Assembly: GCA_965644495.1 (NCBI GenBank)
Contig: CBFFSA010000014.1
Coordinates: 62,001 to 126,000, forward strand
DNA: 64,000 bases
Source: Perkinsela sp. CCAP 1560/9
Lineage: Eukaryota; Protista; Euglenozoa: Kinetoplastea
Direction: 5' to 3'
Position numbers and translations under genes: made by a program. Positions within the stretch are counted from its first letter, which is position 1, and each line of letters starts with the position of its first letter. Below the pieces are notes generated by a model that ran no database searches, was not told where the DNA came from, and worked only from the letters and a program-made list of their open reading frames with translations. Shown here one piece after another: positions 4,440-30,989 of this stretch.

Positions 4440-5270
4440 AGAGGAAATGTGAAATTTCACTTGGGGGGATGCGGGTGTGCATCACCGAACCCGCGCTTTG
4501 CATTTGAGACCGAACGAGATCTATTTTAGTCCGAAAAAATGGGTTGAACGTGCATAACGTACTACATGTACGTTATGCATCGTGCTCATACCTTGCGTGG
4601 AACATTTTCTACACAATGTCCTCAAAACAGCAATGTAACCTTGGCTCGAGAGTGACATTTTTTTAGAGTTCGTAAAGAGTCTTCTAATTTTTCTTTCCCA
4701 AACATACAGACAGAAAGGATGATTTCAAAGGTGTCTCAACAGAACAACGAATGAAGGAGCGAGAAAATTTCATGCAAGAATCCGTCGAAACACTGCAAAA
4801 TTGCCGAGCTTGAATTGTCACCTTGGAGATGAAGGTCGTACATCGCTCTTAGAATCACTGGTTTACCCTGTTGATGTTCTCAACACGTCTTGCTGAAGAA
4901 GTGGGAAATGAACTTTACTGTCTTAAACTCTTCTTGTTCCGTTCAAGAGAAGCATGATGCCTTGCAAACTTTGGGTCCGAAACTCATAGAAGAAGCTCAG
5001 CTTGCACTGAATTGTCCGGAAAGGAATGCTTTTTTTTGGCGGCGTCACGCGATTCTTGGCGGCGTCACGCGATGGGATACGAACAAATGTGACTCCATAA
5101 AGTACGTTATACGAAAGTTGCCAACGTTGACTAGATTAGTGGAGCACCACTGCACGAAAGAAAAGACACCCTGTAAGTCAATTCAGGATATTAAGAACGG
5201 AGATGCCTTAAGCAAACTGCAGCAGGAAAAAAAAGAGCAGGGTTCGCGGAAACTTTTAAACCTTAAATAA
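4440..5270 (+). pseudogene. Degraded copy of the hAT-like transposase family of 19421-22045
   Basis: Fragments LIPCVEHFLHNVLKTAM (cf. LLSCFGHFLNNLAMDAM) and LGGVTRWDTNKCDSIKYVIRKLPTL (cf. LGGVTRWCHDKFSSISFFSTQLPTV), broken by stops and frameshifts. Confidence 0.75.
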
Positions 5271-17987: not shown

Positions 17988-18737
17988 TCGTGAGTTTGTA
18001 AGTATAGTTTAAGATATAAATATTTATTGCAGGGTTTGCACAAACTATTAAACTATCAATATACAATGAAGTACTATATACACTGCCGACTAATATTACT
18101 GTGCCCCGGCACTTATAGTGCCGCGGGGTACCCCCCCACTTATAGTGCCGTTTCGAAAAAAAATGTCCGAGAAAAAATGACCAAATTTTTTGACCAAAAA
18201 GTAGAGCAAATACGGTGTAAATTTCTAATATATTCGTGTATGGAAATAATTGAAACTTTATTATTAGTTCCCTTCATCAGTTGGACACTATGAAGATTTA
18301 GATGGCAGCGGATGACACTGGGTGGCAATTTCGTAATGGTTTACCCAAACTAAAATTTGTGGAACGGTTTGCGCACATCTGAAAAAAAGTAAGGATGTAA
18401 TCGAGAGAATCATTTTCTGCAACTTCCGTGCTTACATCGCCTCCAACAAATACTAAATGCAGAGTCACGAACTTTGCCACCCTCGTGATGGTGAGGACAT
18501 TTCTCTTCGGTCACGCGCCATGCTTCCAAAATCTTCAAAAGTTTTTCGTATGTCATCATCATGCTTCCAGTTTAGGAACTGTATTATTAAAAGCTGTATT
18601 ATTAGGAACTGTAGTATTAAAAGCAACGGTGCTTCTTTTTTTCAATCACGCATCAATCGCGGCCTCAAAGGAAGAAAGCGCCAGAGAAGCTTTAACAAAG
18701 AGAGAAAGGCAATTTTAAGAAAAGTGCACCTTAAATA

Positions 18738-21700
18738 CATAGCTGTCATTCGACGTCGAAAATTGCAATTCGACGTCTTCGAATGTCTTTCGACGTCGAA
18801 AAAATGGGTCTTTCGACGTCGAACGAAGGAAAAAAAATGGGGGATTCTTGTGTTTATGTGCAGCACTTGAAAAAATGTTTCGATCGACGGATTCTTTTCA
18901 CTACAGTAATTTGCTATGGTATTCGGACGAATAGATGACTACCAGAGAATAAGAAAGTAGCAACGTATGGTTGTCGTCAGGTTGTTCGTCAGACCGCTAG
19001 GAAGTTCTAACCGTGTTAAATGCGTCACCTTTTATTTGAAACATGTTCAAATACGTAATTAATGAAGTTTAATAAAAAGATACGGAAAATTATGACTGTA
19101 CTAGTCATTATCATAGTATAAGCTTATGACGTTTACTGTTGCCGTATAGCTAAGCACAAAATATCTCGCGTTGCAATAATACAAGAAAAATTTAAGTGTG
19201 AGGAAAAAATTTAGCCTTAATGGTCCTGAAGTATGAGACAAAACATGGAAAAAACCCCAGAAAATATCAGTTTCCGAACAATACATGAAACATCCATACA
19301 TAAATAATTATACAGTAATACAATATAACAATATTATAATGGGTTATGAATTTATGACGTATCAGAAAAAAAGCAGACTCGCATCAGGAGCCATTAAGTA
19401 ATTCGGAAGCTTGAAAGAAGTTACACCGAATCCCCATTTCCCGCTGATCCTAACTGTTCCAAATTGTCAAGATACCCGAGTTTGTCGTAGTTCCCCCGTA
19501 ACAGCATAGAGTTTTGTACTGTTTGAGTGCCCATGGATGATTGACGGGAGTTGTACTTGGTGTTCATAACCGACATCCAAGAATCACATTTCGTCACTAA
19601 AGGGGGTACCCATAAATAATGTATCGCCGCTTGATGTATACCTGGGTATTTGTAGACTCCAACTGTTTGCCACCAATGCAATTCGCACTTGTGCACTCGC
19701 GAATCCCATTCGTAGTCGACGCAATTCACATATTCATTCCATTCATTTTCCGTAATTTGAAAAATGGGAGAACCGCCTCGAAAAAGGTCGTTAGCACGAC
19801 TGAAATGAATTGGTTCGAGACCGGCTTTCCGGGCGCGTAGTGCAATGAAATCCGGTGCAAACCACATGACGTCTTCCCAATATTTCATATTGTGATGAAC
19901 TGAAAGTCGATTTATGTGATGCTTGAGGGCACATTCAAAAGCTTCACTGCAGCTTCCCACCCGACTAGCCTTCCGTAATCTTTCTAAAGTTGGCCAAACT
20001 CCCGTTGCTAAAGGCGTACCGTCTAAATCCGAAAATTTTTGTAACGCTTTCTGGATAGGAGCTAGTTCTTCGAGAAAATATTTTGCGGAAGTCGCCAGGT
20101 TATCTACCCCTTCCCGAGCAATAAGATCCGCACACTTACGTACAGACTGACAAACTCGGGGGTTTTCCAGTTCTTGCTTCAGGAACGCGACAACAGTAGG
20201 TAACTGAGTAGAAAAGAAGGAAATGCTGCTGAACTTATCATGGCACCAGCGAGTAACTCCCCCTAACTTAGGAGCCGTAATGCCGTGTACATCCTTTGCT
20301 CTACGAACAGCTTCAATTACTTGAGGTCCATACAATGAAAGTGCGTCACGACAGCGAGGAATATTTTCATGCTGAGCGTTCAGTTCCGCCAAAATTATAT
20401 CAGCTTCATCGGGCGCATATTGTTTCAAAATTTGTACGCTGCTGCGAAGCTGACACACCAGCTCTGTCTGATATTCATCGTCCAGTTTATTGCTAGACAG
20501 CCCCCCATACCATTGAGTGAAAAATTGTTCCGCTTTGTTAGTTTCTTCGTCGAAAGATCCAAGAAGAACGTCTAGGGCCACACCACGATACCGCCCCTTC
20601 TTCGTACAGATCTTGTCATGTCCATAAAATGTTTGTCTGAAGAGCTTTTTAAGTTCAAAAAGGGGTGTTTCCTGAAAGGGTTTCATCGCATCCATCGCGA
20701 GGTTATTGAGAAAATGACCAAAGCAAGATAGTAAGGAGACGTGTGGCATCATGTCCACGGCCCGGTTTCCGAAGTTTATCCAGTCCGACTCCCCAATTCT
20801 TTGAACGCGATCATATATTCTTTTTAATTCTCCTTCTGCCTCATCACGGGCCACGTGGTTAACGGCACAGCCATCCACCATTAAAAACCTCATTTTTCGT
20901 ACCAGCGTAATGCCGAGAATAGAATTCAATGTATTAACCAAACTCTCAGCTGTTTCTTTGCCGTTGAATGCCTTCCGCTTCGGATGATACATGGGTGGTA
21001 ATAGATATTGCTCATCTGAAACATACACCACCCCTACTAATACGTGCTCGTTGAGCACGGAATCAACCCCAGCATCCACAGCTACCCCGAAGAAAGGATG
21101 AATATCGATTTTTGAAATCATTTTTTCCCATATTTCGTTGGCCAAGTCCTTCTCCCAATCACGCATGACCCTGTGATTGTTGCCGAGTGCATTGAGAATT
21201 TCTTCAGTATTTGCTCGCTTGGGGCGTAATTCTTCATAGTTACGAAGTAAAGCGTGTGCAGCTTTGCATGACAAGTTCGTCTTTGCCACAAGACAGGGAA
21301 CGCAGCGACGAACAAAAACATTTACACTCATTGAATTGTCGTTCGGGGTCAGTGAAAAAAGTTCCGGTTCGTTTGCGATTCTCTGTCCCTCGCGCACTAA
21401 ACAAGTGTGATTGATATGGTGATAGTAATGGTTGTTATGGAGCGAATGACTCCACCACGGACAGTCGCGACACTTTATGTGAGTCCGCTGGCCCAAGGTA
21501 TTCACGAGATGGGGCCGAGGATATTTCTCGGCGTATTCGCGACACTCTTTGTTTTTCTTCTCCAAATCTTTCGTTCTACCAGGCGGGGTATCCATTCCCA
21601 AGCAGCGTTCACGAAAGAATTTTGTCGAAATACGGGGAAACCGCATTGGGTCCTGTACAAGCTGTTTTCGAACTACTTGCCTTACAGAGCTTGCCTGTTG

Positions 21701-22227
21701 TGATGGAGAGGACGACATTTCCTCTTCAAGCCTCGCGGTACACTCTCGTCGTACTGAGACAGGAACATAACTCCCTGACGGAACGTTATCGGAAATTTCA
21801 AATCTGCTCTGGGTAGGACCATCTGCTGCTTCCGTGGAAGCATCTCGCTGCATGGCAGTTCTATTCTTCTTCGCCGAATTGGTTCTCTTGGCACGAACCG
21901 AAGTAACTGAAGGAGTAGTAGATGAAACAAATTCGGAAGAATTTGCTTCAGCTAAAGTTGGCACGATTGCATCTGATGAAAGAGCTGGGGGAGAAGGTAT
22001 GCGGATAGGAATCATGCGCCCTCTTCCTCGAACAGAGGTGTGCATTGTGAAAAAAGAAGTAAATTAACACAAAAAAGTAGAAGACTGGTTGCAAATACAT
22101 TTTTTAAACATTTTATAAACATATATTCTGTTGAAAAAAATTCTTTCAGAAACCACACAAGCACTCAAAATGTTTCGACCTTTCGACCGTCGAACGACGT
22201 CGAATTCGACGTCGAATGACAGCTATT
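18738..22227 (-). mobile_element. Apparently intact hAT-like DNA transposon (CATA ends)
   Basis: 22-bp perfect TIR atagctgtcattcgacgtcgaa, subterminal ttcgacgtcgaa palindromes, single long ORF. Confidence 0.88.
19421..22045 (-). CDS. hAT-like transposase, 874 aa (zinc finger, D-D-CxxH-RW, C-terminal dimerisation-like domain)
   Basis: CRDC..H..H finger, VAVDAG, MVDGCAVN, SCFGH, GGVTRW, WW..YPGIHQAA..LWVPPLVTKCDSWMS. Confidence 0.85.
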   Translation of the reverse strand: MHTSVRGRGRMIPIRIPSPPALSSDAIVPTLAEANSSEFVSSTTPSVTSVRAKRTNSAKKNRTAMQRDASTEAADGPTQSRFEISDNVPSGSYVPVSVRRECTARLEEEMSSSPSQQASSVRQVVRKQLVQDPMRFPRISTKFFRERCLGMDTPPGRTKDLEKKNKECREYAEKYPRPHLVNTLGQRTHIKCRDCPWWSHSLHNNHYYHHINHTCLVREGQRIANEPELFSLTPNDNSMSVNVFVRRCVPCLVAKTNLSCKAAHALLRNYEELRPKRANTEEILNALGNNHRVMRDWEKDLANEIWEKMISKIDIHPFFGVAVDAGVDSVLNEHVLVGVVYVSDEQYLLPPMYHPKRKAFNGKETAESLVNTLNSILGITLVRKMRFLMVDGCAVNHVARDEAEGELKRIYDRVQRIGESDWINFGNRAVDMMPHVSLLSCFGHFLNNLAMDAMKPFQETPLFELKKLFRQTFYGHDKICTKKGRYRGVALDVLLGSFDEETNKAEQFFTQWYGGLSSNKLDDEYQTELVCQLRSSVQILKQYAPDEADIILAELNAQHENIPRCRDALSLYGPQVIEAVRRAKDVHGITAPKLGGVTRWCHDKFSSISFFSTQLPTVVAFLKQELENPRVCQSVRKCADLIAREGVDNLATSAKYFLEELAPIQKALQKFSDLDGTPLATGVWPTLERLRKASRVGSCSEAFECALKHHINRLSVHHNMKYWEDVMWFAPDFIALRARKAGLEPIHFSRANDLFRGGSPIFQITENEWNEYVNCVDYEWDSRVHKCELHWWQTVGVYKYPGIHQAAIHYLWVPPLVTKCDSWMSVMNTKYNSRQSSMGTQTVQNSMLLRGNYDKLGYLDNLEQLGSAGNGDSV

Positions 22228-23552
22228 TAAAATAGCTCCAAAAAATTAATGGTAAGCGTGCAGTGACGAAGGTATTCGTCTTTTTCGTTATGGAAACATG
22301 CGGAATACAGCTCGCCATTTCGAAATTTGTTGACGAATTAATATTTCACAAATCTATATTTTTGGGTATCCTTATATCACATTTTTTTACGACCACTATA
22401 CCCCATACCCATCAGTGGAGTAGAAACATTTACCGCTCTTAGGCACTCAAAACTACATGATAGAAAGAATTGCGCCGCGAAGCGGCGCGCTCTTTTTTGG
22501 GGGGAAGAAAATTTTCACCCTCGACCTGAAACATACTACCCCCCCCACTTATAGTGCCGTTTGGTCGAAAACTGCGGCACTATAAGTGGGGGGGCACAGT
22601 ATTGAGTTTTAATTATTAGCGAAGCTCTGCAACTTTTAATTAAAAAATCAATAATATTTGTGCCAATAATTTTTGTAGAAATTTGTGCATATCGACAAAC
22701 AATAGAAGTTGTTGGTAGAGGGGCGGAAAAACCCAAAATTAGGTCAAAAGGGTTTTTTTGCTCCCAAAAAGATTCAAGAATTTTTACGGGGAAGAAAGTT
22801 GCTTATCACCAAAAAATTATTATCCTTCGGAATTACAAGTGTCCCTAGGTATAACCCGGACGGTGGTTTGCATCTCTCTAATCTTGTCAAATGCGTTGCG
22901 AAGGGCAGGTTATTAAGTGGTCATTAAATGATGGGATGCGGGTGTGATCTCGTATGATCTCACGACCAGGTGTTGACATAAAGCCAATCTCGATCATCCT
23001 GCGTCAAATCTTCTCATAAAATTTGAATTTTTGTGTAAAATCTATAGCACTCTTCTCTAAAACGTGGTTGCCAAGATCAGACCTCATGAGAAATTCAAAA
23101 ATTGACAAAAAAGATAAAAAAAATGTTTCTCGCCAAAAATTGACAACTTTTAATTAAAAAAACAATAATTTTTGTGGCATGAATTTTAGCGATAATAATT
23201 TTTGGCTTGGGTGTAATTACTATAAACGTTTTTCAAAAACTATAAAAAACTATTTTTCTCTGTATTTCAAGGCGCTTTTAAGCCCTTGGACGCGCCCTAT
23301 TTACATGAAAATGTATTTTAATCCCTTTTTTCTTCATTTTAGAACCGAAAGAGATGCCCGAAACGAAACTGACGAGGAGAAATTTCTGTAAAGACTATTT
23401 TAATGAAGTACCGCGCACGGGAGGACAGAAACCAGTGGTGGAATGCAACCTGTGTGAGGAGGGAAGTAAGAAGCGGATTTTGGTTCCAAGAGGACTATCG
23501 ACAGATTATCGTTCCGCAGAGAAGCACTTAGTGAAACACGACAAAAAATATG

Positions 23553-24299
23553 GGGTACGAGGACACTTCCGTGAGTACTCATCGAAACGCCCACGTGTCA
23601 AAACGAAAATCATCGAAACGAAAGAAACTCATCGAAGGTGATTTTAATTACTTTTAGCACAAACAAATTCAATCCTGCGGAAGTGGCAGACATAGGTTCT
23701 CAGTGTGCGACCCGCGCGCTGGAGCGCACGGGTCGCCAAAAAATATAGTTATGTCCCAGGGCTACGCTCACAGTTGGGCCTCGATCGCAAACGGGAGCTT
23801 TTGCCTCCAGAAGTGAGCTTCGCTCACAGTTGGGCCTTGCCTCCAGACACGTAAACTAGGTGTCGCAGTATAGGAAAACAACTTTACAATCCTGCGCAAG
23901 TGGCAGACATAGGTTCTCAGTGCGCGACCCGCGCGCTCCAGCGCGCGGGTCGCCAAAAGATATAATTATGTCTCAGGGCTACGCTCACAGTTGGGCCTTG
24001 CTCGCAAACGGGGGATTTTGCTTCCAGAAGTGGGCTACGCTCACAGTTGGGCCTTGCTCGCAGACGGGGGCCTTGCTCGCATACTTGGGCTTCGCTCATA
24101 GTGGAGCCTTTCCTCCAGACACGTAAACTAGGTGTGGCTGACTTCTTATTTTCATGATCTCGACTTTCTTTTCCCAAAGTAATTAAAGTCACCTTCGATG
24201 AGAAGATTGACGTTTCGATGAGTCACACTGTGACACGTAGGCACTTCAATGAGAAATCATCGAAGTGTTGCAAAAACTCACGGAAGTGCCCGGGGGGCC
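23553..24299. mobile_element. Non-autonomous TIR element with 8-bp TSD (GG..CC ends, Merlin-like) and internal ~218-bp tandem duplication
   Basis: TSD aaaatatg at 23545-52 and 24300-07; IRs gacacttccgtgag/ctcacggaagtg and tcatcgaaggtga..aattacttt. Confidence 0.8.
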
Positions 24300-24403
24300 A
24301 AAATATGATACCTGGTGTGCTGAACAAAACGAAAAGCGTCGACGTGCAAAACCGACGTTAAACATCTCGTCACAAGCGTCCAAACCTCAGGACCATAAGG
24401 ATA

Positions 24404-26320
24404 TTGCGGTGGTTGTATAACTACCGCTCTACCCTCGATTATTGAAAAAAAGTGAGCAAAAACAGTGAAAATATAAGAGGAACACAGTAATATACCGGTG
24501 AAACGGTTATTAAGGATAAAAGTAATTAAGGCGGAACGAATTTAAAAATTAATTATTGCCTTAATTAATGTTGCCTTAATTAAAGTGGCGCTGATAAAAG
24601 CCGAAAACAGTTCTTATTAAAATATTCTCGTTCGTAGCATAAATATCACATTTCTGCTAAAAGTGTTCAATTTCTGATCATTTGTCATGTTTTTCGAAAT
24701 GTTTTGGACGAGCTTTACGGTCTTCAACCAGTTCAACGTGTGAGAGAAAAGCTAAAAAGAAAGGAGAAGTCTGAGACGGAATCATGAAGTTAATTTTTCC
24801 CAATTTTTCACCCAAAATGACAAAAAATTAATTATTGCCTTAATTAAAGCTGCCTTAAATTTAATTACCCTTAATTGAATTTTCTACGGTAATAAAGAAA
24901 AAAAAAATATAAAAGGGGGCTCCGGTGGTCCAAACTTGGAAAAAAAAATGAAAAAAATGGGGGGTCCATAGGGGGGGTCTAGGGGCGGGCATACCGCACA
25001 AATTTCTTTTTGAAAAAAATATTTTTCGAAAAAAACCCTCAGAAGCGGTAGCCGGGGTCTTGGCGCGCATTTTCCACCCCCCTACCCGGGGGCGACCCCC
25101 CCCGCGTATCCGCAGGACGCATCCGCCAAGTTCGGATTTTTTCGGATGTTTTTTTCGAAAAAAATATCAATTTGGCGAAACAAATGGCAAAAAAAATATT
25201 TTTCCAAAATTGTTTCACCTTCGAAACATTAAATCGCTTTTTAATTAAAACGAGCATGTTCCCAATATGCCCGAACTTAAGCGTGACACCGTTGAAAGTA
25301 ACTCCAACATAGGCAATACAAGTATGCATGACCCTCTCCTCGTCCATGCCTTCGCACCTAATTTGATCCACTACAGAGGTTGGAAGTCCTTCAACTACTT
25401 GTGGAGTCAAGCACAGTGGGAAGTACTGTGCACCAAGAGGCACAACTACTTGCTTACAGGATACGCAAGGTTCTGTGTCGCTGCCGTCTATGCGATACGC
25501 ACAAACAAGACAACGCTTTGGTGCAACAAGTGAGACGTTGCGCAAAACCTTACATCTCATTTCCTTAGTGGGCACATTTCCTTAGTGGCAGGCTCGGGCA
25601 TCGTGCTAAAAAATGCGTTTAAAGACTTCTTAAATAGTACTGCTTTAAGAAATATAAATATTGATTGAAGTATGATTGAGGAAATTTGTAAAACAACTGA
25701 TTTAAATCCATGAACAAAAGCATAAATTTTGCAAAATAGTGGCAGACAGTGGCAGATGGTGGCGGACAAAACCATACACTTCTGCAGTACATCCATGGAT
25801 GCTTTTTTTAAAATCGATTCTTTTTTGAAATTTTTAAAATCGCTTCATCTATTGTATTTTTATAGTTTGGGACCTACACTACCTTTCTACGCCATTGTTT
25901 TCGACAGATATCCCTTCTTCAAGCCGTGGTATGCCCGCGTAAATGACCCATTTTTGACTCAAAAAGGTGAAAAAATATTTTTCGGACCCCAAGGGGCCTT
26001 TTTGTGTCGAAAGAATGGTGTGGTTGGAGTCGCATTCTCTGCCGAATACGTTTGTCAGGCTTTCATTCATGACTACGAGTGATTTCCCACACGCAAATAT
26101 CGGATTTAGTGCTCTGAGAGCAAAAATACCGAAAAATGACCCCATTTTTACCGAAAATCGGCTAGTTTTGATAATGATCTTTCCGTTTTCTTCAGCTTTC
26201 CACGCCAAATTTTCTTTTTTAGGTTCTTCGTTAAACGCGGTGGTAGTTTTCAACGCGAAGTGCGCAGCACTAGTGACTTATAAGTTGAAAACAACCACCG
26301 CGTTTAACGAAGAGCCTAAA
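24404..26320 (-). mobile_element. Family A copy carrying a nested MITE and ~580 bp of extra sequence
   Basis: Both family A ends present in reverse orientation; interrupted at 24495-24889 and ~25220-25800. Confidence 0.8.
24495..24889. mobile_element. TA-flanked MITE with ttaattaa repeats
   Basis: Imperfect TIRs ccgg..ttaagg / ccttaa..cgg; TA duplicated within the family A consensus. Confidence 0.65.
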
Positions 26321-27118
26321 TATTAGTTTGGAAAGCAGAGTTCGGAATTTCAACCGCAGCTCTCGAACATCCGTTGTTTTTTAACAGAAGTGTACGAGGT
26401 ATGTGTCCCACTCCACCTCGAAGGGAAAAATTAAACGAACTGACCATTGAGTATGCAAAGCAAACTAGAGTAAAGATGTGCGTTGACCTTGGTTTAAAAT
26501 TTTCGGATGTGAGTTTATGTTTAGACACAGCCACTTTTCACCATAGTACGACCTGCGCCGTTACAATGATCAACAATGGTGTTTCTATGTATTGGACCGT
26601 CAAACCCATGCCCGCAAGTGATGCATCTGCCTTTCAACTTCTATTAAAACATACCCCTCCTGGGCAAATGGGTAATTACCCACGTGGTGGTAAACGCGGA
26701 TAATTTACCCGGGTCATTGACCCATTTACCCGCATTCACCCAGATTTACCAACCAACCATACGATCCCGTACTAGAATAAAGCTCGATGACTGTGCCAAC
26801 TTTGCTGAGCAAGTTGTCGCTACAGAAACAGTATCTCAATCCATAGAAGGAAAAATCCGTCTTTCATTCGGTTTCCCCCCTTTCCTATCCCCTAAACCAA
26901 ACAATCTTTCTTTATTTTTTTTATTTTTTTTCTTGACCTGGCGGGCTTATCCCCGCTTCATACAGTACTAATACTATACTGTATAGTAATCACTGTACTA
27001 AAGTCAAATACAACTACTGCGTAAAATCCACATAATGTTAAGTCAGTTATGTTCTGTATCTGACAATGATTCAAGCTCACTATCATTTTCCAGCGAATCA
27101 GCATCACCTTGAGTCATA

Positions 27119-28677
27119 CAGGGGGGTAAATCAGATGCTGCGGGGGGTCTAAAAATTGCAAAACCTTTCCAATTTTGGAAAATGATAGCGTATTCGAGAG
27201 CTCTCGAAGAGTTCTATGTTTTAGAAAAGGCAGCTTCCCGGGGTATAGGGGGGTGTTCAACTGACAAGAAGCCCAAAAACGTCAAAACACAAAAATTGTG
27301 AGAAAGGTTTTAGACGACTAATAATTACAACTTTCTCCTTTTTTTTCTACTACTATGTCGAAACGCCGCTGCATGCTGTTTAAAGTGTTAATGAGCATGT
27401 CATGACCATCTGTTTTAATGTAATCAACCGCTCTTTCAATAGAAAACAAGAGTTCAGTCCTATTTTCTGGATTTGTACCATTTTTAATAAAGGCATCCAT
27501 AATTTCCTAAATGTTTTCAATGGGGTTAAGATCTGGGGATTTTGGGGGAAAGTCCAAAACAACGACTTCGTTTTCTTTAAAGGTTCTAAAACTGCCATTG
27601 TGGCAAGGAGCATTATCCATAGCAACCCGGGACCCGCTATGACGCTTTAAGAAACTTAAAAAAACCCCTCTTTTTGTCATCGCGCATTTAAAAACATCTG
27701 AAGTGATGGTAATTTTCCCATTACTGTCCCTGTTTGGAAAAACATGATAAAAAATTCCATAAATAAAGCTTATACCCATCCAAACGTTCACTCCATCCCC
27801 CCCAAACCACTTTTGCGAAGCTTTTAGAGGTGGTTTCGGGGGGTCACTTGCTCTGCAAATGTAAGAACGGCTTTCGCGCCCAAGTTGACAAGTAAACTTT
27901 TTTTCGTCACACCAAATAATGTGACGAAGCTGTGCGACAGACCACTTCTGCATTTTCAATGCAAAGGTTAGTCGCTTGGCCTTATGAGATTCAGTTAAAA
28001 AAAGGCCTTTCGAAAAAGAACGTTGGATTATCCCGGCGTCCTTCAAAAAATTTACTACAGTTGGCCTGCTGCAGGTGAAACCTCGTTTCCTGACCTCTCG
28101 AAGTATAAAATTCCAGGAGGGACAACCGCGTGTGCTTGACGTGTTGGCCGTGTCAATAATCTCGTGGCACGCATCAAGAAGCCCGGGTGTCGCCACAGTG
28201 CGTTCGCGAGGGGGTGTGGAACGTTCAACGTCCCCGGTTTCCTCAAAGCGTTTCACCCACAACTTGACAGTGCTGTGGTGGACGCCTTCTCTTCGGCAAG
28301 TGGCACTATAGGAATTTGTATTCTCGTAATCTTTTACAAGAAGCATCCTATGTGAATATTTGGTGTGCCCAGGGGAGGAGTACGCCCTATCGGAGAGAGA
28401 TCCTTTGTTCTGCATAGAACGGGATCGCTTTCGCGGCATAAAACTGAGACGAAATGGAGAAAAAACGAAAAAATGAGCAAATTTGGGAAAAACTGCAAAT
28501 TTTAGAGGGGCAAAAAAACTTAAAAAAAATGCCATAAACAAAATTGCTTTCTTTTGGGGTGAAAATAGCGCAAAAACATAGAACTCTGCGAGAGCTCTCG
28601 AATGCGCTATCATTTTCCAAAATTTGAAGGGTTTTGCAATTTTTAGACCCCCCCGCAGCATCTGATTTACCCCCCTG
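27119..28677 (-). mobile_element. Tc1/IS630-like transposon, ~100-bp TIRs, TA TSD
   Basis: caggggggtaaatcagatgctgc.. TIRs at both ends with TA flanks. Confidence 0.92.
27318..28439 (-). pseudogene. Tc1-like transposase (DD32E) with one in-frame TAG
   Basis: MPRKRSRS..HTH..IIWCDEKKF..MDNAPCH..PPKSPDLNPIENI*; frame continues to 27318. Confidence 0.88.
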
Positions 28678-30989
28678 TATATCCTAGCTTGTCACAATTT
28701 CCTCGCACGAATATCTGGTGCGATACAACATCGGGAGCAAGGGAGGCCTGGCGTGAGCTATACATATATCCAAGCACGTATATCCAAGCACGGAAAGACA
28801 GGAGTCGCACCTGTTGACCAGGGGTGGCGTCCAAACGTAGTGTACGGCAGCTTCGTAAATCGCTGGGAACATTTCACATCCAGGACAACACCACCATTCG
28901 TACTCGTTGCTGAACTTAGACGGATCCCAACTGAAATCGAGGCATGCTAAGTATTTTTCCCACTCATCGGATGAAATACGAAAGATCGGCAGCTCGGCCG
29001 ACGGACCGTCCGCATTTTTGTCAAAAACATTATTTGCTCGAGCTACCGAGATGGGGAGAAGACCACAAGGACGAGCGAACTGAACGATCCATCCGGGACG
29101 GAACCAGAGAACATCGTTCCAAAAGCGGATATTATGATTTTTTTGTAGACGAGTCTTGTGATAAAGAAGTGCTTCTCGCATTCGCGAGGGCGCTTCGTCA
29201 CTTTCGCTATGTTCGAACAAGAGCTGCAGCGCAGTTCCGACCTGAGTGAGACGTTTTTAAATCGGCAATGAGATTGAAATGTGCAACCCTCTGTCGTGCA
29301 CACAAAGTGTACTTTTTGGTTAAGGGGGTCTATAAGAACATCCGCGTGTTCGTGCGGACAGTTTGGCGGGCAGCGAGCCAAATTAAAGTGCCCAGACAAA
29401 GACTTCACCGTCATCTTGTGCCGCTCGTTTCGCTTTGATCGCTTTGGGTCCGGGGTCACTATCTCATCCTCAGAGCTTGATTCAGATGAAGCGATCGGTT
29501 CGGGCGTACTGACTGTCGATGATCTTCGCTTGGGCATGTAATAAATAGACGATAAAAGTGCAACGCTATCAGCAAAGTAAATGATATTATGATTGAAGGA
29601 AAAAGAATCTGAGATTTTTCCGATAGGTATACAAAAATAAAACATTTAAAATCATTTAAGGTACAACTTTTCAGTTCCTGTCATCGAGCGGGTAAACGTG
29701 GGTAAAGCGGGTAAATGGGTAATTTACCCGGGTAATTACCCATTTACCCGGCAGGGGTATGTTAAAAGAGGTTGTAGAGGAGCTTTACGCCGATCGAATT
29801 TTTGTGGCGCACGAGGCTTCAGACGCAGGAGCTGGAATCAAAAAGGGTTTAATAATAACCGCTGAAGAGAGTGGAATAGCTTACACTGTTTGCATGGTCC
29901 ACTCGCTTCAACTTTGCATGGGGCACACAATGCGGATGGAAAATACTGATGAGATTTTAGGCCTCGGAAAAAATTACGAAAAGTGACGGGTACCTTGTCC
30001 GACACGTTGGTGGTCGACCTTTGACTCGGTCGAACATGCTCTGGGTGATTCTGATTGGGAAGCGTTTACGACAAAAGCTCGAATGTTTTCGTGGCTTGAG
30101 TCGCTTCTCATTTATCCATTGTTGGCAGATTCATGGAAAGAAACGAATGTACGCTCCCCACGGCAATGCGAATTTGGATGCAGCTGATAAATGACGTATC
30201 TCAGCCACATGGGATGGTCTTAGCAGATCGCCTTGTGCGAATTTTGCGACACGAACATCTTTTTGCTGCATCACTGTCACCATGCATTGACTGGAACGGA
30301 CGGTCTTGCATCGTAGGACTCGGCCAGTGTGCTCGCAATTGGCGATAAAGTTGTCAAAACCCCCCAATAAAGAAGCGTCCGAGCCGGGAGTGCGTCAAGA
30401 TTTGAATCTGTGGTTTAGTGGACGTGTGCAGGAGTTTTTTAACATGAACGAAGGTTTCTCTATTGAAAAAGAAAGTAAAATGTTTAAGTTTTGGTCGGAC
30501 TTATCATTTAAAGGCAAATTTTTACATTTGCCTAGGGCGGCACAGAAGCTGACTTCCTTTGTTGCTTCTGAGGCAATTTGTGAGAGATTGTTAGTTCCGT
30601 AGAATTTATAAACCCCGCGTCATGAAAAGTGACGCCCACTTTTTTTCGTACATTTGTCCGTTTGAGCTGATTTTTGTGGCATTTTGCACATCTCACCATA
30701 GGAACTTTGCGCGCTTATTAGCGGGCCTCAACAGAGAACACCGACTATTTATAATTTTTTCACATTTCCGCCTTTCAATCTTATACACTTCTTAAAGGCG
30801 TGAGTCAAAACTTAAAACCGTATTGTCGATCACATTTTGAGATAAACAAGACCACGCTTTGCGTACATATCGGATGAGTGAAGGCTTATCCGAAGGAGTC
30901 TGTTCGTCCACTGCCCCTTATACCATAGACCGGACGACCCTTAGTCCATAGACCAGACGCAAGTATAATTTAAAATATACAATGTATTG

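Follow-up and report, generated by a model that had tools for sequence, protein, structure and literature searches.

The stretch of DNA analysed here, hereafter the window, comprises 64,000 nucleotides of the genome of Perkinsela sp. CCAP 1560/9 (C14:62001-126000 of a 21-Mb assembly in 110 contigs). It carries a 3,490-bp element that is very probably an autonomous hAT-superfamily DNA transposon moving by cut-and-paste, from a distinct clade with an Asp-Asp-Asp (DDD) triad. The hAT transposases, among them Ac, hobo, Hermes and Tol2, are a textbook family with an Asp-Asp-Glu (DDE) triad. In the element described here, an aspartate (D821) is found where these enzymes have the catalytic Glu, and copies collected from the genome are flanked by target-site duplications of 6 bp. 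A preliminary description made from the sequence alone had proposed an intact hAT-like transposon with these properties and with CATA termini. Coordinates of the features are given in Table 1.

The transposase gene is a single open reading frame (ORF) of 874 codons with no internal stops, as previously described. To specify its relationship to known enzymes, an AlphaFold model was built from an alignment of 23 diverse family members (mean predicted local distance difference test score, pLDDT, 75.6). The proposed comparison with Hermes gave the best match by far: VIA-align superposes model residues 252-860 on Hermes 116-609 with Z of 23.1 (404 residues, root-mean-square deviation 3.2 A), and Hermes accounts for all of the top 10 Foldseek matches. 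The next-best folds are retroviral integrase cores (Z at most 11.7) and ISCth4 (10.2); P element, which shares a CxxH motif with the Kolobok and MULE superfamilies and is marked by a GTP-binding insertion, was also considered and rejected, with Z of 9.2 against 23.1 for Hermes. Residue identity between the window protein and Hermes is only about 12%. Nevertheless, a full-length profile of 23 sequences (A5) matches full-length Hermes with an E-value of 6.1e-13 in three colinear blocks. These place the CxxC finger on the BED region, D324 on D180, and, in the third block, TRW598-600 on T317-R318-W319 together with D821 on E572. By homology of both fold and sequence profile, the window protein thus belongs to the hAT superfamily.

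Individual domains are recognised to different degrees. The hAT dimerisation domain (Pfam Dimer_Tnp_hAT, PF05699, cut-off 21.4 bits) is detected in members from the same genome (34.9 and 33.8 bits) as well as in distant ones (33.4, 29.2 and 25.1 bits). Near the N-terminus, a conserved CxxC...H...H block (residues 189-215) aligns weakly to the BED region of Hermes (independent E-value, i-E, 0.034). It lies below detection by Pfam zf-BED, which matched neither the window protein nor the family members scanned. Neighbours in a protein atlas are exclusively of hAT type, with scores of 0.90 or less; we regard them as leads, not as evidence.

The position of the third catalytic residue was examined with alignments of different depth. 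The motif around D821 reads PPLVTKCDSWMS in the window protein. A profile of the C-terminal domain from 42 sequences (A4) aligns to Hermes with an E-value of 4.7e-9 and without gaps over the motif, the family consensus VVTsCDSvlS falling on SSAASERTFS. In this alignment the invariant Asp of the family stands on the Glu at index 497 of the 2BW3 chain, or residue 572 when numbered along the full-length chain 8EDG_A. The same register was obtained when the family was compared by hhalign with canonical hATs of the same genome: D821 falls on the Glu of their CERIFS motif (probability 92.9%), and this Glu itself aligns to Hermes E572. An earlier hhalign run with a shallower family alignment had given the same register with a probability of 4% and was replaced by the deeper one. 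Depth mattered for the search of known structures too, since a single-sequence phmmer search and an 8-sequence profile retrieved nothing relevant from PDB sequences, and Hermes was reached by the deeper A4 and A5 only.

In the model, D324 lies on a strand, D391 just past a strand, and D821 at the N-terminal end of a helix (residues 818-830). Such a strand, post-strand and helix-start layout is usual for the catalytic triad of RNase-H-like enzymes. Around the third residue, mean pLDDT of the deeper model reaches 91 over residues 811-820 and 85 over residues 821-830. As for another Glu in the active site, none is conserved in the family: no column of A5 holds Glu at 90% or more, the residues conserved at this level including D324, D391, C441, H444, R599, W600 and D821. 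Alignments and model together thus support a predicted triad of Asp-Asp-Asp instead of Asp-Asp-Glu, as the preliminary description had claimed; the Asp codon which it had singled out (19583-85) is indeed that of D821, GAT. Transposition by Hermes requires D180, D248 and E572, and all of its steps are lost in the mutants E572A and E572C (PMC2533014). By analogy, D821 would coordinate a metal ion and take part in catalysis.

We wondered if the Asp could reflect decay of a single copy. A tblastn search of the genome gave at least 55 matches, many with intact ORFs at 35-43% identity to the window protein, and 235 relatives were retrieved when a profile was searched exhaustively against 1.84 billion representative proteins (a word-based protein search found 3 proteins only). 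Asp occupies the column in 50 of the 52 relatives that cover it, the remaining two having His (a transcript) and Gly (a fragment); Asp is likewise found in additional full-length cluster members, and no Glu occurs at the site among the 150 best of the 235 relatives. A Glu codon is one step away from an Asp codon. Over the distinct genomic copies, D821 is encoded by GAC in seven and by GAT in six cases, and by GAA or GAG in none. Between lineages, synonymous divergence (dS) is saturated while nonsynonymous divergence (dN) amounts to 0.2-0.75. Copies of one lineage have a dN/dS of about 1, the value expected if they decay once inserted. Judged from these sequences, the Asp at the Glu position is kept by selection and is not a product of decay, in line with what the diverged copy in the window had suggested earlier.

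The relative with His, P0003, is a 776-aa transcript from the EukProt set PhF_6 and the only full-length relative without Asp in this column. It retains D324, D391, CxxH and RW motifs, and its Dimer_Tnp_hAT domain scores above the cut-off. It may represent an inactive or domesticated copy. Named relatives are transcripts from two prokinetoplastid EukProt sets, PhF_6 and Papus ankaliazontas PhM_4. The relatives looked up carry no annotation other than "hypothetical protein", come from metagenomes or run assemblies except for these transcripts, and are absent from NCBI and UniRef.

Table 1. Features of the Asp-type hAT element and related elements in the window (positions are those of the window)
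Feature	Position	Strand	Basis or remark
Complete, probably autonomous element, 3,490 bp	18738..22227	transposase gene on minus	12 family termini; C12 copy (99.7% identical); empty-site contigs joining 18732 to 22230
Left target-site duplication, TAAATA	18732..18737	n/a	
Right target-site duplication with one extra A, TAAAATA	22228..22234	n/a	
Left terminal inverted repeat, 23 bp, starts CATA	18738..18760	+	
Right terminal inverted repeat, 23 bp, outermost base changed	22205..22227	-	
Left subterminal palindromic repeats, TTCGACGTCGAA	18749..18826		cores at 18751, 18791, 18814
Right subterminal GACGTC palindrome copies	22195..22218		cores at 22195, 22207
Transposase ORF, 874 aa + stop, uninterrupted	19421..22045	-	best fold match Hermes (Z 23.1)
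CxxC (C192, C195), putative N-terminal BED-like zinc finger	21461..21472	-	aligned to Hermes BED CRKC (domain i-E 0.034)
D324, predicted first catalytic Asp, AVDAG motif, strand 319-328	21074..21076	-	aligned to Hermes D180; at least 90% conserved in A5; beta-strand in model
D391, predicted second catalytic Asp, MVDGC motif	20873..20875	-	at least 90% conserved; just past strand 385-390; adjoins block ending at Hermes KFV(T)D248
CxxH motif, C441..H444	20714..20725	-	invariant in A5 and in all covering relatives
T598-R599-W600, hAT "RW" motif	20246..20254	-	aligned to Hermes T317-R318-W319; R599 invariant, W600 at least 90% conserved
D821 (GAT), at position of hAT catalytic Glu	19583..19585	-	aligned to Hermes E572 and to canonical CERIFS Glu
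Second, diverged element of the clade	26650..29761	-	CATACCCC...GGGGTATG ends; internally deleted
Weak relic of third element, region around TRW motif	4956..5186	+	tblastn, 31% identity, E 4.8e-5, residues 567-636

Further, we examined the ends of the element. A perfect inverted repeat of 22 bp (18739-18760 versus 22205-22226; chance expectation 0 matches) had been noted before. Search of the whole assembly yielded 14 termini of the CATAGC family to which the window element belongs, and 11 of 12 close termini carry an extra outer C beyond the 22-mer. This extends the true end to a 23-mer, CATAGCTGTCATTCGACGTCGAA (18738-18760 and 22205-22227). The perfect 22-bp repeat stands as reported, but it falls one base short of the real terminus, and the outermost base on the right is mutated in the window copy (T at 22227, G in other copies).

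CATA termini are borne out family-wide in the form of CATA...TATG ends. Inverted ends of hATs are short and typically of CAG/TAG type (YARNG rule). Across all lineages of the clade the ends read CATAG, CATAC or CATGG, so that agreement with CAG/TAG ends is limited to the first two bases, CA. Palindromic TTCGACGTCGAA motifs recur immediately inside both ends of the window element. Subterminal palindromes are lineage-specific, TAGTATATACTA, AGTACTTAAGTACT and CGGTACCG being found in place of TTCGACGTCGAA in other lineages (L017/L020, L019, L065 and L067). This hints that the DNA-binding domain of the Asp clade reads palindromes and coevolves with them.

Paired termini, collected genome-wide and including the second element in the window, define 11 exact target-site duplications in at least five lineages, and the length that had been given as about 6 bp is exactly 6 bp. 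Close copies are flanked by ACACAT (contig C12), TGTATC (first copy in C5), GCCTTT (C3) and ACCCCC (second copy in C5). Diverged lineages with CATA...TATG ends are flanked by GTGATC, TATTTA, ATAATA, ATTTTC, AGTAAT and TAAAGA, with one further pair of termini matching at 5 of 6 positions. Metagenome contigs of two distant members, L065 and L067, have CATG/CATA ends and palindromic subterminal repeats without matching duplications; both were probably assembled from more than one copy and were therefore left out of the count. TTAA is the target of Kolobok elements. This superfamily was considered because of TTAA in the window flanks, and is ruled out by the 11 varied 6-bp duplications. Among 12 duplications (the 11 exact ones and that of the window copy) the first base is never C and the last never G, a symmetrical bias that may be due to chance or to a boundary effect at this number of sites.

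The window copy itself has TAAATA at its left flank and TAAAATA at its right flank, as previously described. The four public sequencing runs compared with the window all consisted of contigs. Contigs from run X3 contain the empty target, in which 18732 is joined to 22230 with five ambiguous letters (...CACCTTAAATAGCTCC... and TTAAATAG). From this uninterrupted target it follows that the duplication of the window copy was TAAATA and that its right copy gained one A. The empty-site contigs probably derive from other copies of a repeat of about 1 kb that hosts the element; they document the target as it was before insertion and need not represent an allele. Both defects of the window copy, the terminal G to T change and the extra A, are located at its right junction, while the rest is 99.7% identical to the copy in C12. 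They could be a scar of failed excision or an assembly error in the T/A run.

The host repeat (18099-22600) has inverted ends CTGTGCCCCGG... and is flanked by TA. Its own empty site is read through by contigs from runs X1 and X2 and by a loose end from X3 (...CGACTAATATTATTGAGT...), which suggests a non-autonomous element of Tc1/mariner type, absent at this or a paralogous site.

The same genome provides an internal control. Its canonical hAT family (examples in contig C37, at L062:516-2913 and L021:40-1003, and in the window at 23354-30602) has a SEAACERIFS motif with Glu, a PTRWWS motif and the Dimer_Tnp_hAT domain; the ASEAICER motif noted earlier in the BED-hAT of the window is present at 30291-30599. 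Canonical ends are CAGGGTTCGCAG (CAGGG), and duplications are of 8 bp in both of two copies examined. With 40 + 40 termini genome-wide (about 40 pairs), the canonical family is far more abundant than the CATAGC family with its 14 termini. Many canonical copies are about 1 kb long and resemble miniature inverted-repeat derivatives. Both types of element thus share host, superfamily and Dimer_Tnp_hAT, and their C-terminal domains can be aligned. In contrast, the Asp clade has a CDS motif with Asp, CATA ends and 6-bp duplications, and the canonical family has Glu, CAGGGTTCGCAG ends and 8-bp duplications. Since the canonical family combines CAGGG with 8 bp, the combination of CATA with 6 bp belongs to the Asp clade, and is neither a property of the host nor that of a borrowed canonical enzyme.

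Recent movement is evident from the second intact copy in contig C12, which differs from the window element at 12 of 3,490 positions (99.7% identity), has both canonical ends of the family and a clean ACACAT duplication. Two other copies (C3:218754-222214 and C5:249464-252924; L004-L007) share a frameshift that splits the gene into ORFs of 543 and 395 aa overlapping at residues 498-516. They are inserted at different sites, with GCCTTT and ACCCCC as duplications, which means that transposase from elsewhere must have acted in trans on a defective copy. The earlier suggestion of potential activity is strengthened by the near-identical copy for the family, and less so for the window copy, in which the right terminal base is mutated.

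The following mechanism is proposed. A putative N-terminal BED-like zinc finger would probably bind the palindromic subterminal repeats. D324 and D391 would lie in the RNase-H-like core and the CxxH and TRW motifs in a long, all-helical insertion domain, and the C-terminal hAT dimerisation region would return D821 to the active site. If it works like Hermes, the transposase would make nicks at the CATA ends, generate hairpins on flanking DNA with W600 assisting, and excise the element. The 3' OH ends of the element would then join target DNA at points staggered by 6 bp instead of 8, giving rise to 6-bp duplications. Both the hairpin chemistry and the movement of the element by the family's own protein would follow from this analogy.

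Compared with Hermes (PDB 2BW3, 4D1Q, 6DWW, 8EDG), the window transposase has the same fold including the helical insertion domain, the first Asp, a second Asp assigned from adjacency and topology, CxxH and RW motifs, the C-terminal dimerisation region and a putative BED-like finger; short ends starting with CA and subterminal repeats are shared as well. It differs in Asp for E572, in duplications of 6 and not 8 bp, in CATA and not CAGAG ends, in its low overall identity, and in the spacing between second and third catalytic residues (430 versus 324 in Hermes). Among hAT hallmarks, the clade thus displays the Hermes-like core with insertion domain, the dimerisation region (in family members) and the CxxH and RW motifs, and lacks Glu as third residue, 8-bp duplications and CAG/TAG ends. 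Asp as third catalytic residue is known from the DDD enzymes mariner and piggyBac (PMC2533014), which likewise have an RNase-H-like core. However, these represent unrelated superfamilies with TA or TTAA targets, without hAT insertion domain and dimerisation region, and rank far below Hermes in fold comparison.

Departure from the 8-bp rule has precedents, and the clade might belong to a group already described, for example Repbase hAT6 or an unpublished euglenozoan family in Repbase or Dfam, in which case Asp and 6 bp would be known features. Three recognised groups, hAT5, hAT6 and hAT7, duplicate 5, 6 and 7 bp, respectively (PMC12730594); the definition of hAT6, with its 6 bp, goes back to Kapitonov and Jurka (2007, cited therein). 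With their 6-bp duplications, Asp-clade elements match hAT6 in its operational definition only. By their descriptions, which do not mention DDD, hAT7 occurs in rust fungi, and hAT5 and hAT6 sit inside an animal, Blackjack-like lineage (PMC12730594), whereas named relatives of the Asp clade are prokinetoplastid. Absence of Glu among its 150 best relatives, lack of any named entry for those looked up in NCBI or UniRef, and a literature search that revealed no hAT with a DDD triad likewise make identity with a described group unlikely. No description of a hAT combining Asp for Glu with 6-bp duplications was found in the full-text literature searched. The status of a possibly undescribed lineage, proposed earlier, is supported by absence only: neither a relative known by name nor a paper was encountered.

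Still less probable is a third metal ligand other than D821, either because a different acidic side chain fills that place or because the alignment is out of register and these are DDE enzymes after all. Low identity to Hermes and the uncertainty of the first model at residues 818-822 would allow for it. Against this, Asp and Glu share a column in ungapped stretches of three independent alignments (two by HMMER, one by hhalign), in which a neighbouring Pro and the Ser three positions further on match as well, A5 has no Glu column conserved to 90%, and D821 begins a helix as does the third catalytic residue of RNase-H-like enzymes. Least probable of all is that the proteins are dead or domesticated and that the elements are moved in trans by canonical Glu-type transposases. 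The His in one transcript and the shared frameshift of the C3 and C5 copies, which shows that mobilisation in trans occurs within the family, are compatible with this explanation. Yet canonical enzymes with CAGGG ends and 8-bp duplications cannot account for CATA and 6 bp, and the catalytic landmarks are conserved across lineages whose synonymous divergence is saturated. Moreover, inverted ends, duplications and occurrence in at least 55 places are unlike a domesticated single-copy gene.

Several observations nevertheless speak against an active hAT transposon with a DDD triad and have to be set beside the evidence for it. The first, shallower model had pLDDT below 50 at residues 818-822, which rose above 85 only with the deeper alignment. 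The match of D391 to D248 relies on adjacency and topology, with no printed aligned column. Dimer_Tnp_hAT scores only 14.7 bits in the window protein, under the cut-off, and the D821 column is occupied by His in full-length P0003 and by Gly in a fragment. The window copy may no longer be mobile because of its mutated right terminal base and imperfect duplication, and a search of public runs revealed no RNA run containing the element.

The window harbours further elements. The second member of the Asp clade has the exact TTAAAA duplication that had been reported for it (26644-26649 and 29762-29767), and its C-terminal ORF contains the motif PPLVNRCDSCLS, so the Asp is present in the diverged copy as well, in agreement with the preliminary description. 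A Tc1-like element (about 27142-28653) with a 384-aa ORF containing HTH_Tnp_Tc3_2 and DDE_3 domains is inserted in it. As the second Asp-clade element itself interrupts the canonical BED-hAT, a three-level nest results at 23354-30602. A third relic had been placed at 4440-5270; a weak tblastn match supports it, although it covers 4956-5186 only. Rfam and tRNA scans of the window gave no matches.

Kinetoplastid DNA transposons reported by 2021 comprised Merlin only (PMC8101967), and the Asp clade enlarges the inventory for kinetoplastid-related protists. A diverse and apparently active clade of this kind would mean that the third ligand is exchangeable in the hAT superfamily, as it is in Tc1/mariner. 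Occurrence of Asp-type (6 bp) and Glu-type (8 bp) hATs in one genome offers a matched pair for the study of the strand-transfer stagger, and transposition assays or genetic tools could conveniently be built on an intact element whose ends are defined. More tentatively, these elements might represent a deep, unrecognised and active hAT clade of euglenozoan-type protists and environmental eukaryotes with a D-D-D site, in which Asp and the 6-bp stagger are linked through a tighter geometry of active site and target. If so, the clade would provide the first candidate for a native cut-and-paste transposon tool in kinetoplastid-related organisms.

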